A stretch of DNA of 64,000 bases from Orbicella franksi. Its lineage: Eukaryota. Shown here in pieces: positions 59,001-63,626 of this stretch. Each line of letters opens with the position of its first letter. Within the stretch, counting starts at the first letter, position 1. A model generated the notes under the pieces. It saw only the letters and a program-made list of their open reading frames with translations. It was not told the DNA's origin and did not search any database. The DNA lies in contig OZ116709.1 in assembly GCA_964199315.1 (NCBI GenBank), positions 2,790,001 to 2,854,000 of the forward strand, given 5' to 3'. Both the position numbers and the translations under genes were made by a program.

Positions 59001-62000
59001 GCAGCAAGTAATGTATTGTCAACCTTACTGGTCTGTGTTTTCGTATGACTCTTACATTACAAAACATTCTCACCAGTGTAAAAACATTAAAATCACTCTA
59101 AAAAAATTATGGAAACTAGCATTGATAGAGAAGAGTTTGAATCATTCTTTTGGTACATTTCAACTTGTTCAAGTGCTTTCTGATTCCTTTTTTTTTCTCT
59201 GTGTTTCAGGCATTGTTCAAGGCTGAAGATGAACAGGATGCTTGTGCTGCTACTAGAGCTAAGGCTGAACAGGCTGCTGAGTTGGCAGAATTTGATGAGG
59301 GAATCCCTTTGAGTGAAGATGGCAAAGTAAGTCTGAACGTATCCAGATGCTCTAGTTACCAGAGTTTCGGTCATGGGGGATAGTTCATGCACCAAAACTG
59401 CAAACAAAGTCGAGGAAGGGACCATTGAAAGTTTTGTGAAATACAGTGTGTGTTTTTCGTCTGACGAGGGTTGGAATTCGCCGCTTTACCTTACAAACCC
59501 ACTTCTCTTGGAGCAAAGGTTGAGAGTTGCTCTTCAGCTTATTAAATTAAGAGTTAACAGTGTCTTACAAACATTTATCCATTTGGCTTAAACCTTGTAT
59601 GTTTACAGTTAAATGTTAACAGTAGATATTCCACAGTCAATCTAAAATTTTGCCTCCAACTGCATTTTTCTTACAACTGTAGGGTTTACGAAAGGAAGAG
59701 GAACAATCAAAAGTGGAGGAAGAGCTGTCTGCACTGGAGAGCCAGGTGACAAGACCTGCCATCTCTGTTTATAATGAGAAAAATAGAATTCAGGGCAGTG
59801 AATACTGTGGATGGTAGACAGTATCTCAGTGCTCATTAAATGTGACTCTGATTACTGAATCAGCTTAAGGGATCCTTTCTTGTTGAAATCAAAAGAGAAT
59901 CAAATATGTTGACACCAAAAGTGTTATAGGAAAGACAATTTATGAGTTTATTGGAGTTTGTTCAACGTTGAATTTATACTTTCCCATTTCTCTTTAAGAT
60001 GTCTGCTGTGGAACGATATGCAATTCGTTTCCTTGAGTCATCTGGTAATTACATCACACTGGAACAAATAAAAGCAGCCAAGGTAAATAAAATAACTTTG
60101 CTGCAACTCTTCTTCTCTTCTAAAGTCAGAGGAGAGCCCAAGAATTTTGTTTTAAGGTTGGATTATTGGAGCATGGTATGTTTTGGTGAGGTTTTACGTT
60201 GCAAATTGTTTCTGCAATAGAAATATGTCAGAGTGATTTGGCTACTGTACATCTTATTTGATCAGCCCAGTCATATTATGCTCAGGGAAAAGTCAGGAAG
60301 CTTAAGTTGCAGTCATGCATGGCAAGCATGCTATTGCAATGTTCAATAGCAGGAAACCAGCACTCGTGGTGTCTTCAATTGTAACAATGCTAAATTAGGT
60401 TGTACTTAAATAAACACCACAGTGTCCAAACTGTAGTTTATTTTTTTTATAGGATGAGGTTGAGATGGCTAAGAAAGACTGGGAACTTGGTCACCTACAA
60501 GCTCTGAAGAAGGAAGAAGAGAAAAGAGCTGCTGAAGAAGAGGACGAGATCTTGTACACGTACACACGGGAGGAAGCTTTGCAGGTTAAAAAGAATAAAT
60601 CAAAGTCACGTAGATCTAGACCCAACAGCAGATGCTCTAGTAAGGGTTCCTCAGCTTCACAACAAACAAAAAAGAAAATTGATTCAGAAATACCAAGTAA
60701 GGAGGCTCAAGTGACTGTCAGGAACAGTTGCAGCAACAGTCGCACTTCATCTAGAGCTAGCAGCAGAAGTAGCAGCTGTAGTAGTTCTAGAAGAAATACG
60801 AGGAGAACTAAGTTTCCTGATGACATTTAGCTTTTGTCTTTGAAATTGCAAGATTATTCCCTGGGAAATTATGGTAATCTCCTGTATTTCAGGAAGCTAA
60901 ACAAGTAAATTTATTTCAGTACAAGTTACTTACTATTTGCTGCCCAAATTGATACAAGTAGCCTTAACTTACAAAGTTTAAAAGAAATCACTTGTCAGTT
61001 TTTTGAAGGAGAAAAATTGTTGGGTGGTTACAAAATGTTCTTTGTTTCAGCGAAGATTGCACAATGAAAAGAGATGTTTATAAAAAAAATATGACAGAAT
61101 TCAGTTTAGACAGTTATTTATGGAAAACATTCAATGAAATTAATTTTGCTTCAATTGTATGTATAAAGGAAACAGGCTGGAAAATGTAATAATGGGTGCT
61201 TTTGTTAAAAAAAAGTGCTGCAAAAACTTTCAAATAAACAGATGTTTGAAAACTAAATATTGCTGTGTTTGTCATTCTTGTATCTTCTCTTGATTGCAAA
61301 CTGGCTTCTAAATTGTCTTTTGAAACTGTTAAACTAACAAGCAGCAGTCTGCATGTTAGTTTGACATTTGCCAGTAGTTTTGGATGGCTGTACAGCGTTA
61401 GCATTGCCGACAAGATCATTGGTGTCCAAAGTTGTCTTGAAGTTGCCAAGATGTAACCTTGTGCTGGTCCATTTTTGCAGCAAATCCCGTAATTCACTAT
61501 GTTGATGGTGCTTTGGCTGGCATTTTTGCTAGTGTCTTGTTCATTGCCATGGCAGTGTTGCTTCCTCACTCCCATAATGCATGATTTTCGCACCATAGCT
61601 TACCATCCATCTCATCATTTTAACTCAGACTTTCATTTAAGTCATTTTTTTGTGTCTGTTGAGGATGTGATTTGGTGATAATGTGAGCAGATAAACTGCA
61701 CATAAATCAGTTACCTTATCACTCGCTATGTTGTTATTTTGTGTAGCTTTAGTCATTTCTTCCTTTACTGTATTGGAAAAGGTGCTGTATTCACACCTTA
61801 ATAGCAGAGGCTAGAATTGTTTCTGAAACATGCAGTAATTTTCATTAAATATGTCATATCGTTGACAACTTTAAATTGTTGCTGCTGCTCTTGACACCAT
61901 CCCCAAGCTTGAAAAGGGGGGGGGGGGGGGGTGTCTATTTCCCATTTCCGCATGCTAGCCTATGCCATCCAACCAATCAAGAGAAGGTTTAAAAATGACA

Positions 62001-63626
62001 GGCATTTCAAGGCACTTTGGAACCACTCTTGCTGAACAGCCATTCAGAGCCCTTTTCACCTCAAAAATTTCTATTAAACACCCATTTAGATTTTCCCATA
62101 AATTGCGGTTGTTGTTTTTTGCTGTAAACTGACTCTTTGATCTGTCACAGATAACACATGACATGTATGTGCACAAAACAAAACAAAATAAATAAATGCT
62201 AAACAAATTATGTAAATTTGGGTATTGAGGCTAGGAAAGTAAGAATCTGGTGACCAAGGGGATGTAGATATATGGGGGATGTATAAGTAAACTACAGATT
62301 CATCAAACTAGCAAGTACACTGTAAGATGTTTAGAGGCTTGTGCAGATAATTTGGAGACTGCATTCAGGCTAGCACATGAAAACAGATAGGCAAACATGA
62401 AAAGCAATCATGCAATCATGCCATCCAATGTGAGAGGTGCATCAGATGTAAGCAAAGAATTCTACACTGATGATTAAGTTCTAAACAAACATAGCAACCA
62501 GAATTCAGTCATTTCTTTCATGGGACATTGATGGTATTAAACCTCTCGGCAGATTAGCATGAAAACAAGACAACAGGGTCATCCTGCACTGTGTCGAATG
62601 ATGTGTTGACCTTATTGGTGTGCTTTGTTTACCAAAGTAATTATGTTATCAAATGTTCAACTTTAGTAACAGCTGTTGAATGAGTGTGTAGCAAGAGTAA
62701 TGCATATTCAACAAACAGGGGTTGAAGGGTGTGTGATGTGAACTGGTCACTGGTTGCTGCATTTTGCCTAATCTCAATTTGCCACTGGCTTCAGAAAATG
62801 TGTCAAAAAGTTATTGTTCTCTCCATTAGGTGTATGTAAATGATGCTACTGGTGAGGAAATGCCGGTTAGTGCTTTATTGTTACTTACACAGGTTTAGGG
62901 CAGATGTGGTGTCAAATTTGGACATCTTTATTTTACAGTTGAACAAAAACCTGATCTGCAAACCTTCCTTGAAATTCTGGGTGTTGTATGGGAGTTGGGG
63001 GAAGGGGATGTTCCCAGACTCTCCCCCCCCCCCCCCCCAATCCAATAATGGTCATGCCTTAAGTCCCATACAATATGTTGGGTGTACACTTTTCAAAATC
63101 TGTCTATCAGTCTACGTGCACAGTACATGGCATGAACCCTAGCAATACCAGGCAAATGGATTTTCAAAAGGATCATTTTACTGATCTAGGACAAATCAAG
63201 CACGACTGTTCTTGGATAAGTATAGTGTTAAGAATCAAAATTTTGAAGAAAACTTAACAGCAGTTTCCTGCAAAATGTGGGGACCAAAACCAAGAAACCT
63301 TCCGTGGAAAGGAAAGGGTAAAGGGTATGGCACATTTGGTTTTGCTGTAAGGAACAAAATAAAATTTGCATTTACAAAATAATCTGTGCACTAAAGCTGT
63401 TTACTTGGTTGGACTGGAAACCAATCTCACCTAATTTTGATAATAAATTACTAAAAACATTATTGAAAGTAAAGAAAATTGTCCTTTCCTAATTGTTGTA
63501 GATCTGGACCCCACCGACCCCTCCCCGAGATGGACAAGATGAGGTGTATGTTGATCCATGTCAAAATTACTTATATGACTCCACACCTATGGCAGCCAGT
63601 CGTCTGCCACCTCTGTATTTAACCAG
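44007..63626 (+). CDS. SRCAP: SWR1-family chromatin remodeller SRCAP/EP400/domino; 3' end runs beyond the window
   Basis: Exons 44007-45854, 46205-46345, 46852-47050, 47502-47745, 47845-47940, 48588-48745, 49297-49401, 49636-49703, 50195-50287, 50365-50679, 50943-51053, 51857-52108, 52549-52685, 53288-53354, 53836-54831, 55451-55677, 56271-56473, 56695-56749, 57050-57164, 57293-57604, 58517-58714, 59210-59326, 59683-59745, 59999-60082, 60453-60584, 63502-63626. HSA ([23 protein letters not shown]), [27 protein letters not shown], a split ATPase insertion, [41 protein letters not shown]. Confidence 0.95.
45881..46018. mobile_element. MITE, best-preserved copy of the family
   Basis: TIR CAGGCCCGGTTGTTCGAAAGG versus CCTTTGAACAACTGGGGCCAAG. 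Confidence 0.8.
49023..49158 (+). ncRNA. Box H/ACA snoRNA, paralog 1 (SRCAP intron 6)
   Basis: Hairpin TGGCCA..CCTGAGG/CCTTAGG..TGGCCA; H box AGATAA 49084-49089; second hairpin with pocket TAAAAC/TTCCTGTC; ACA at 49153 plus 3 nt; 136 nt. Confidence 0.85.
51357..51724. mobile_element. CMITE-like coral MITE with internal (GAC)n
   Basis: TAGGGAGTTTAAGAA ... TTCTTAAACTCCCTA, a perfect 15-bp TIR; trinucleotide repeat beside the left TIR. Confidence 0.8.
52200..52334 (+). ncRNA. Box H/ACA snoRNA, paralog 2 (SRCAP intron 12)
   Basis: GGCCAC..GTGGCC stem; H box ACAGTA 52258-52263; CTCTT-TTAAAAC-CCACTG..CAGTGG-TTCCTGTC-GAGAG; ACA at 52329 plus 3 nt. Confidence 0.85.
53061..53196 (+). ncRNA. Box H/ACA snoRNA, paralog 3 (SRCAP intron 13)
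   Basis: TGGCCA..TGGCCA stem; H box AGATAA 53122-53127; pocket TAAAAC/TTCCTGTC; ACA at 53191 plus 3 nt; 136 nt. Confidence 0.85.
53541..53719. mobile_element. MITE-like element with 11-bp TIR
   Basis: CAGGGCTGTCA ... TGACAGCCCTG; no target duplication seen. Confidence 0.6.
55303..55375 (+). ncRNA. SNORD18: Box C/D snoRNA, U18/SNORD18-like, copy 1 (SRCAP intron 15)
   Basis: Terminal stem CAGC/GCTG; C box ATGATGA 55309; guide GGTCCGTGTTT before D' TTGA; D box CTGA 55368. The guide is complementary to conserved LSU rRNA AAACACGGACC. Confidence 0.85.
55974..56051 (+). ncRNA. SNORD18: Box C/D snoRNA, U18/SNORD18-like, copy 2 (SRCAP intron 16)
   Basis: Stem AACAGC/GCTGTT; C box ATGATGA 55982; GGTCCGTGTTT-CTGA (D' 56015) matches the recalled U18 core; D box CTGA 56042. 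Confidence 0.9.
57834..58286. mobile_element. Non-autonomous TTAA-flanked element with GG termini (Kolobok-like)
   Basis: TTAA-GGTAATTCCC (57830) ... GGGAATGACC-TTAA (58290). Confidence 0.6.
60585..60830 (+). CDS. Putative alternative C-terminal coding extension (intron read-through) of the domino-like gene
   Basis: The frame stays open 81 codons past the 60584 donor: [16 protein letters not shown]...RRTKFPDDI*, basic and Ser/Arg-rich. AATAAA at 61233-61238. Confidence 0.6.
   Translation, partial: VKKNKSKSRRSRPNSRCSSKGSSASQQTKKKIDSEIPSKEAQVTVRNSCSNSRTSSRASSRSSSCSSSRRNTRRTKFPDDI

Follow-up and report, generated by a model that had tools for sequence, protein, structure and literature searches.

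In animals, deposition of H2A.Z (SWR1/SRCAP) and acetylation of H4 and H2A (NuA4/TIP60) are kept apart on scaffolds that are close relatives, which raises the question of the evolutionary route to this separation. In the published view, yeast and humans use separate genes, and flies, perhaps along with other arthropods, reach the same end by alternative splicing (PMC7239659). A locus of the stony coral Orbicella franksi raises the question of whether the one-gene arrangement extends beyond arthropods. The locus is located in a stretch of 64,000 nucleotides (assembly GCA_964199315.1, contig OZ116709.1, positions 2,790,001 to 2,854,000 of the forward strand), which is termed the window below and whose numbering is used throughout. 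The window holds most of the coral's single SRCAP/EP400/Domino-type gene, which lies on the + strand from ~43.9 kb. Two isoforms of this gene exist as RNA; they share the HSA and ATPase regions and differ in their C-terminal coding part. The best overall explanation, which we consider likely, is one coral Domino gene with a splice-or-polyadenylate switch after the last common exon, here called exon B.

The gene exhibits both features that mark the SWR1/SRCAP/EP400/Domino subfamily of SNF2 proteins, which are an HSA domain and a split ATPase whose closest relatives belong to the subfamily. Pfam detects EP400_N (E=1.8e-11) and HSA (E=3.7e-11) in the frame at 43893-45869, so HSA is N-terminal to the ATPase, and the same frame is matched by oyster and crinoid Domino proteins in tblastn searches. 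The ATPase N-lobe at 50.3-52.1 kb (SNF2-rel_dom, E=8.7e-31 and 4.5e-21) is separated from Helicase_C at 57.2-57.6 kb by a long insertion with coding frames (53836-54930 and others). Among solved structures, the N-lobe is most similar to human SRCAP (180 bits), followed by yeast SWR1 (154) and EP400 (135), and then by SNF2 and INO80. An mRNA contig from a related species (P0020) maps on the Helicase_C exon at 91.5% identity. When the insertion exons were compared with solved chains in search of the ARP6-anchor segment of SRCAP, the only match, a weak one to SWR1 (E=0.002), was uninformative.

The gene continues past the window end, and a further 20 kb was also examined. The exon that begins at 65846 matches human EP400 residues 2377-2422 (E=2e-7), all of them within the SANT segment, and a Gln-rich (polyQ) frame is present at 72185-73141. 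Pfam did not detect SANT in pieces cut from three downstream exon frames. An earlier, preliminary description of the window had called the long continuation EP400/DOM-A-like, and the EP400 match and the polyQ frame bear this out. The combination of a SRCAP-like motor with an EP400/DOM-A-like C-terminus is therefore a Domino layout.

A separate SRCAP or EP400 paralogue was not found among the best-scoring candidates of a six-frame search of the genome. The candidates for a second paralogue proved to be CHD1 and exons like those of BRG1, HELLS, ISWI and ERCC6, these four being named from their motifs. Exon B plus the read-through tail described below occurs at one locus in the genome. As far as the best candidates of this search extend, the gene is the sole SRCAP/EP400-type gene found.

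Exon B comprises 44 codons, and a polypyrimidine tract and an AG precede it. Its sequence corresponds to about human EP400 residues 2189-2228, which is a weak match (E=0.03) placed on full-length numbering. The exon ends in the 5' splice site CAG/GTTAAA (the slash marks the exon boundary), which conforms to the consensus at 6 of 9 positions, compared with 7-9 positions in five of six other donors checked, including three neighbors. This weak donor doubles as the codons Q-V-K of an open frame, which extends 81 codons into the intron. The encoded tail (VKKNKSK...TKFPDDI) contains 24 Ser and 22 Lys or Arg residues, has an isoelectric point of 11.6 and gives no match in Pfam. The preliminary description had been made from the letters alone, and its statements about the sequence (the exon at 60453-60584, the donor, the 81-residue tail and its stop, AATAAA at 61233 and IWTPPTPP at 63502) are all correct.

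Evidence that the donor is both used and bypassed comes from public RNA. The stretch 60453-61260 is present in 20 public runs, 8 of which are recorded as RNA, and assembled contigs of four runs from four studies (X1, X4, X9 and X11) were mapped on positions 59901-65900. All four runs contain the joints 60082-60453, 60584-62830, 62865-63502, 63626-63937, 64011-64546 and 65005-65846, and all except X9 contain 64699-64955. The preliminary description had proposed that 60584 is spliced to 63502. The donor and the phase-0 acceptor are indeed used in the four runs, but a 36-nucleotide microexon stands between them. A direct junction is absent from all four runs; contigs drop rare variants, so occasional skipping of the microexon is possible. 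An alternative donor at 60697, which had been considered as the real exon end, forms no joint in the four runs and is not conserved.

Each of the four runs also contains a read-through contig that starts at 60557 inside exon B, at a fork of the assembly graph, and crosses the donor. Its far end falls at 61257 in two runs (X1 and X9); X4 puts it at 61248 and X11 at 61908. The X1 contig carries 14 terminal A's where the genome reads TATTGCTG. The 14 untemplated A's after 61257 indicate a poly(A) tail, added 16-19 nucleotides past the AATAAA hexamer, and a transcript ending at ~61.2 kb, as had been predicted, is thus represented. From the poly(A) site to ~62.5 kb, the intron has zero coverage in X1 and X9, so the signal reflects neither DNA nor plain intron retention. 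The locus therefore has the hallmarks of a composite terminal exon: a donor that is used and read through, an intronic AATAAA, untemplated A's and a stop in coverage at the site.

Run X11 is different in that its entire intron is covered at lower depth, which looks like total RNA. Such coverage, resembling pre-mRNA, and the weakness of the donor are what might be expected if the read-through RNA were noise, either from premature cleavage and polyadenylation or from a retained intron at a weak site, with an open frame that is incidental. However, in three of the four runs the read-through contig is at least as deep as the spliced one (k-mer depths of 70 and 22 in X1, 76 and 17 in X4, 18 and 11 in X9, and 51 and 95 in X11). 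In X4 the two branch depths (76.4+17.3) nearly equal that of the contig joining exon A to exon B (93.9). Because contig depths are crude, the conclusion drawn from them is limited to the short form being no minor species. The stretch is also present in poly(A)-selected libraries: of the words sampled from the tail and 3' untranslated region (UTR), 0.73-0.87 occur in those of three further studies, and ~0.3 are still recovered in single-end poly(A) runs as small as 2-3 million letters.

Transcripts of other species extend this picture to the remainder of the protein. In the mRNA contig L021, two upstream exons are spliced to exon B, and the tail follows. In P0020 (401 amino acids), the Helicase_C exons, four further exons, and the tail with its stop occupy one spliced mRNA contig. 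P0020 spans the region from the helicase C-lobe to the tail, and the short protein therefore has a complete motor. Summed from exon-sized frames, the short protein is roughly 2,100-2,200 amino acids long. It retains EP400_N, HSA, the whole split ATPase and all segments that can still be aligned with vertebrate SRCAP.

The tail is conserved as a coding sequence among corals. Searches with the frame of exon B plus the tail revealed 17 protein clusters at E<1e-14, most of them full-length at 67-93% identity, and the tail is conserved in at least 13. The genomic loci compared (L015, L016, L019, L020, L022 and L023) represent five distinct genomes, L022 and L023 encoding the same protein. All of these loci share one layout, which consists of exon B with its donor, a 70-81-codon tail closed by a stop, a poly(A) hexamer (AATAAA or ATTAAA), the microexon and exon C. 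In six coral-like genomes the donor is invariant as CAG/GTTAA[AG], the stop occurs at the homologous place and the poly(A) signal is 369-417 nucleotides after it. Nucleotide identity to the four closest genomes is 0.81 in exon B, 0.72 in the tail and 0.57-0.64 around the poly(A) signal and the GU-rich element that follows it, versus 0.31-0.36 elsewhere in introns.

Substitutions in the tail have the pattern of purifying selection. The pairwise ratio of nonsynonymous to synonymous divergence (dN/dS) is 0.09-0.34 at a synonymous divergence (dS) of 0.2-1.3, which is the same range as in the constitutive exon C. Nonsynonymous changes make up 0.41-0.65 of the differences, compared with 0.79-0.80 under neutrality (binomial p from 6.7e-8 to 0.023). 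Neighboring donors served as controls. In the window, read-through after them remains open for 1-45 codons. In other corals it remains open for 2-68 codons after exon A and for 10-33 after the microexon, and the resulting peptides are unrelated. Because a conserved tail of 70-81 codons follows only the exon B donor and not its neighbors, it is more than a product of chance.

Some points weigh against this interpretation. Chance frames of 31-45 codons are open at other introns of the window, which would also suit transcriptional noise. The RNA support consists of assembled contigs, from which neither the real proportions of the isoforms nor full-length molecules of this species can be read. The tail, moreover, is known here at the level of RNA and sequence. 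Noise would not readily account for the retention of the frame, its length, the stop, the poly(A) signal and the downstream element at these synonymous divergences, for a dN/dS well below 1, or for conservation that neighboring donors do not share, and we regard it as highly improbable. The short isoform is very probably real, conserved and protein-coding, and made by intronic polyadenylation.

The long isoform begins to differ at the microexon, which is 90-92% identical in other corals. Its homologue, V[FY].S....E.MP, is found in the long forms of molluscs, chelicerates, echinoderms and tunicates and in vertebrate EP400. Some spider gene models omit the microexon. The assembled long-form frame of the coral is open throughout (...SVFDRNGF...PDWLIHEDWALLQ). 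The long form carries the SANT/TRRAP-binding segment and the Gln-rich region, and the short form lacks both. In the structure of the human TIP60 complex, EP400 residues 2312-2523 contact TRRAP, among them the SANT segment at 2366-2433 (bioRxiv 10.1101/2024.07.30.605802). All of these TRRAP-contacting residues fall past the branch. Between the later exons, at 5200-5600 of locus L004 (~65100-65500 in window coordinates), an intronic stretch has contig depths up to 1,176 in X11, many loose ends that lead into different sequences, and several variant letters. This stretch has the look of a multi-copy repeat or a mobile element that is expressed.

The same branch point is found in other phyla. When a profile of exon B plus the tail was searched against 1.8 billion representative proteins, it gave 150 matches, which fall into two classes that part at the end of exon B. 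The long class conforms to ..Y.Y.R.D.YNQ/V[FY].S....E.MP/[IM]W.PPTPP, with which the coral microexon and exon C agree. The short class conforms to ..NQ/VKK[KNS]K... and continues in basic, Ser-rich tails of ~90 to 1,900 residues, many of them with GRP or GRGR motifs. Short forms occur in molluscs (Biomphalaria pfeifferi, B. glabrata, Bulinus, Plakobranchus, Mya arenaria, where the protein is named "DOM-like", and Octopus vulgaris, NQVKKSKSKKNSGNK), in arthropods (Limulus, Centruroides, three tick genera, three spiders and the crab Petrolisthes), in the tunicate Clavelina and in the sponge Oscarella pearsei, where a complete transcriptome open reading frame of 1,743 amino acids reads ..SNKVKKKKKQ... 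Examples of long forms are those of Tachypleus, Dermacentor, Parasteatoda, B. glabrata, Mya, Crassostrea, Mytilus, Antedon, Lytechinus and Ciona savignyi, and the EP400 proteins of sharks and teleosts. The sponge and Octopus short forms include HSA, SNF2 and Helicase_C. Annotated short and long Domino forms part at this boundary in B. glabrata, Mya, horseshoe crabs and ticks; in B. glabrata, 1,500 upstream residues are alike (4 mismatches), and the two proteins diverge right after ..KDESQ. Gene models of Strigamia (P0185) and Oppiella (P0194) read ~20-55 tail residues and then splice to the microexon. These models represent either a third isoform with an internal donor or an annotation artefact.

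Whether these branch points are homologous depends on position and composition. A profile of coral tails gave bilaterian tails scores no higher than those of shuffled controls, and the shared V-K start is partly forced by the donor consensus, in which GT is followed by A. Because the tails cannot be aligned across phyla and the V-K start is in part imposed, homology is positional and compositional only. In addition, the coral tail of 81 residues is far shorter than bilaterian tails and lacks their AT-hook-like GRP motifs, gene predictions make up many of the bilaterian short forms compared, and the equivalence of the fly branch point comes from the literature and a short motif described below, not from direct alignment. 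These points count against the explanation favored here.

The first of these observations (tails unalignable between phyla, a start shaped by the donor, and a short coral tail without AT-hook-like motifs) would also be explained if the short isoform were real and its likeness to DOM-B convergent or partial, with intronic polyadenylation having arisen repeatedly or the short form acting as a truncated competitor or a dose valve for the long form. Scacchetti et al. likewise regard flies, yeast and humans as having arrived at their solutions along separate evolutionary paths (PMC7239659). However, one boundary is shared by sponge, coral, mollusc, chelicerate, crustacean and tunicate sequences, for which independent origins are unparsimonious, and purifying selection on the coral tail suggests that the peptide matters beyond mere truncation. 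Convergence is unlikely, though less so than noise. The case for common descent is based on the identical position, the same mode (a frame open past an unspliced donor) and the similar composition across phyla. That the coral branch point is the same ancestral one used by bilaterian Domino isoforms is the reading we favor, with reasonable but not high confidence. From the occurrence of the boundary in these phyla, the switch probably predates the cnidarian-bilaterian split, as the preliminary description had suggested.

Fly Domino is the best-characterized comparison. DOM-A and DOM-B share the same sequence up to residue 2008, and their C-termini are encoded in exon 14 and exon 11, respectively (PMC7239659). 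DOM-A builds a TIP60/NuA4-type complex and DOM-B a SWR1-type complex; alternative splicing of Domino is perhaps widespread in arthropods, by a route distinct from that of yeast and humans (PMC7239659). As in flies, one coral gene encodes a common HSA domain and split ATPase, the C-terminus alone differs, the long form has SANT and polyQ, and the short form has a low-complexity, probably unstructured tail. Unlike the DOM-B tail of 489 amino acids, the coral tail has 81, with no detectable sequence similarity beyond the first residues. The coral short form arises by donor read-through and intronic polyadenylation.

Homologue searches, for example those seeded with Limulus and Biomphalaria Domino, returned chelicerates, other arthropods, vertebrates and molluscs, and no fly Domino. 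A DOM-B C-terminal peptide, taken from a published repair template, had no match among the proteins compared. SPRTRSRG..INLWTLD is the best-conserved motif of the read-through tails in Petrolisthes Domino, where it lies ~110 residues past the Q/V boundary, and in 13 other arthropod-like frames. The reverse primer of the fly DomB-specific RNA interference amplicon (PMC7239659, Supplementary file 4) encodes NLWTLD. This hexapeptide, rather than a branch-point alignment, would tie the DOM-B-specific region of flies indirectly to the read-through class. A longer version of the motif, SPRTRSRG..INLWTLD..P.LPG, recurs in arthropod-like tails (P0199, P0200, P0059, P0106, P0127, P0143, P0152, P0154 and others); the coral tail does not contain it. 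In tails of the DOM-B type, this motif is a candidate functional element.

In humans, the two roles are split between paralogues, SRCAP and EP400, whereas the coral has one gene. The coral ATPase is closest to that of SRCAP, and its long C-terminus matches the SANT/TRRAP-binding segment of EP400. The long C-terminus of SRCAP itself cannot be aligned to the coral tail. Amphibian SRCAP can be aligned with Domino as far as the opening residues of exon B and no further. SRCAP similarity thus stops at about the point where the coral short form ends, and the long form adds the EP400-specific part. At EP400 loci of the teleost-like kind, read-through meets a stop after about 8-60 codons of the intron. 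In yeast, the coral short form is comparable to Swr1, with HSA and a split ATPase and little after them, and the long form, by adding SANT, to Eaf1. Unlike the coral isoforms, these scaffolds of SWR1 and NuA4 are separate proteins of separate genes, without alternative processing. A mechanistic parallel is the switch between secreted and membrane immunoglobulin mu, in which the C-terminus depends on the contest between a weak 5' splice site and a poly(A) site farther down the intron, although gene and biology are different.

By analogy with such composite terminal exons, the fate of the pre-mRNA at exon B could be decided kinetically, by whether U1 recognizes the weak donor before the cleavage machinery, 670 nucleotides downstream, has acted. 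When the donor is spliced to the microexon, the frame proceeds into the EP400/DOM-A-type C-terminus, with W.PPTPP, the SANT/TRRAP-binding segment and polyQ. When the donor is left unused, exon B becomes a composite terminal exon, with 81 further codons, the stop, a 427-nucleotide UTR, AATAAA and cleavage at ~61254-61257. The short form, which keeps HSA, the insert and the motor without the TRRAP contacts, would organize an H2A.Z-exchange complex of the SWR1/SRCAP/DOM-B type, and the long form an acetyltransferase complex of the TIP60/NuA4/DOM-A type. These assignments are drawn from fly biochemistry and human structures, and we give about even odds to the coral isoforms assembling separate complexes, one SWR1-type and one TIP60-type. 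The tail might, speculatively, serve nuclear import, DNA contact or phospho-regulation.

Full-text searches of the literature found no paper that extends the Domino switch beyond arthropods. The coral gene represents the same switch, backed by RNA evidence, and the branch point recurs in sponge, mollusc, chelicerate, crustacean and tunicate sequences. The fly arrangement of two complexes from one gene is therefore probably ancient and ancestral to animals. A more specific proposal, to which we give equal odds for and against, holds the switch to be an ancestral animal feature, with vertebrate SRCAP and EP400 as duplicates of which each keeps one of the old isoforms (subfunctionalization). If so, the likely direction of evolution would be reversed: the vertebrate gene pair would derive from an older isoform pair. 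The single donor and the single poly(A) site would also provide a handle for uncoupling two chromatin activities in a cnidarian model.

Positions of the gene's features in window coordinates (later exons lie past the window end)
Feature	Position	Strand	Remarks
N-terminal coding exon (EP400_N region, start of HSA)	open frame 43893..45869	+	common to both isoforms; Pfam
SNF2 ATPase N-lobe exons	50347..52132 (open frames 50347-50775 and 51857-52132, smaller exons between)	+	both isoforms
ATPase C-lobe (Helicase_C) exon	open frame 57242..57610	+	both isoforms; Pfam E=1.9e-14
Exon A	59999..60082	+	28 codons, phase 0; donor AAG/GTAAAT; RNA joint to exon B in 4 runs
Exon B	60453..60584	+	last exon common to both isoforms
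Weak 5' splice site	60582..60590	+	CAG/GTTAAA
Read-through tail	60585..60827	+	open reading frame of 81 codons
Short-isoform stop	60828..60830	+	TAG
Short-isoform 3' UTR	60831..61257	+	427 nucleotides; RNA contigs
Poly(A) signal	61233..61238	+	AATAAA; sequence, aligned across coral-like loci
Cleavage/poly(A) addition site	61254..61257	+	end of X1 contig and untemplated A's
GU/U-rich downstream element	61264..61290	+	TGTGTTTGTCATT..TATCTTCTCT; conserved in the window and the four closest coral-like loci (identity 0.62-0.64 around the site)
Microexon	62830..62865	+	phase 0; opens the part found in the long isoform alone; joints in 4 runs
Exon C	63502..63626	+	IWTPPTPP...; long isoform, phase 0; good acceptor; RNA joints
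Exon D	63937..64011 (window ends at 64000)	+	long isoform
Later long-isoform exons	64546-64699, 64955-65005, 65846 onward (SANT), polyQ 72185-73141	+	joints; EP400 match; polyQ frame

Other putative genes lie elsewhere in the window. A second SNF2-family helicase gene is located on the opposite (minus) strand at ~27400-33900, where P0020 matches positions 27419-27544 and 28899-29036 and RAD54-like frames occur at 33075-33302. Minus-strand frames at 7683-8960 resemble what we take to be the MYG1/UPF0160 family, and plus-strand frames at 781-3060 presumably represent a glycosyltransferase family 8-type gene.

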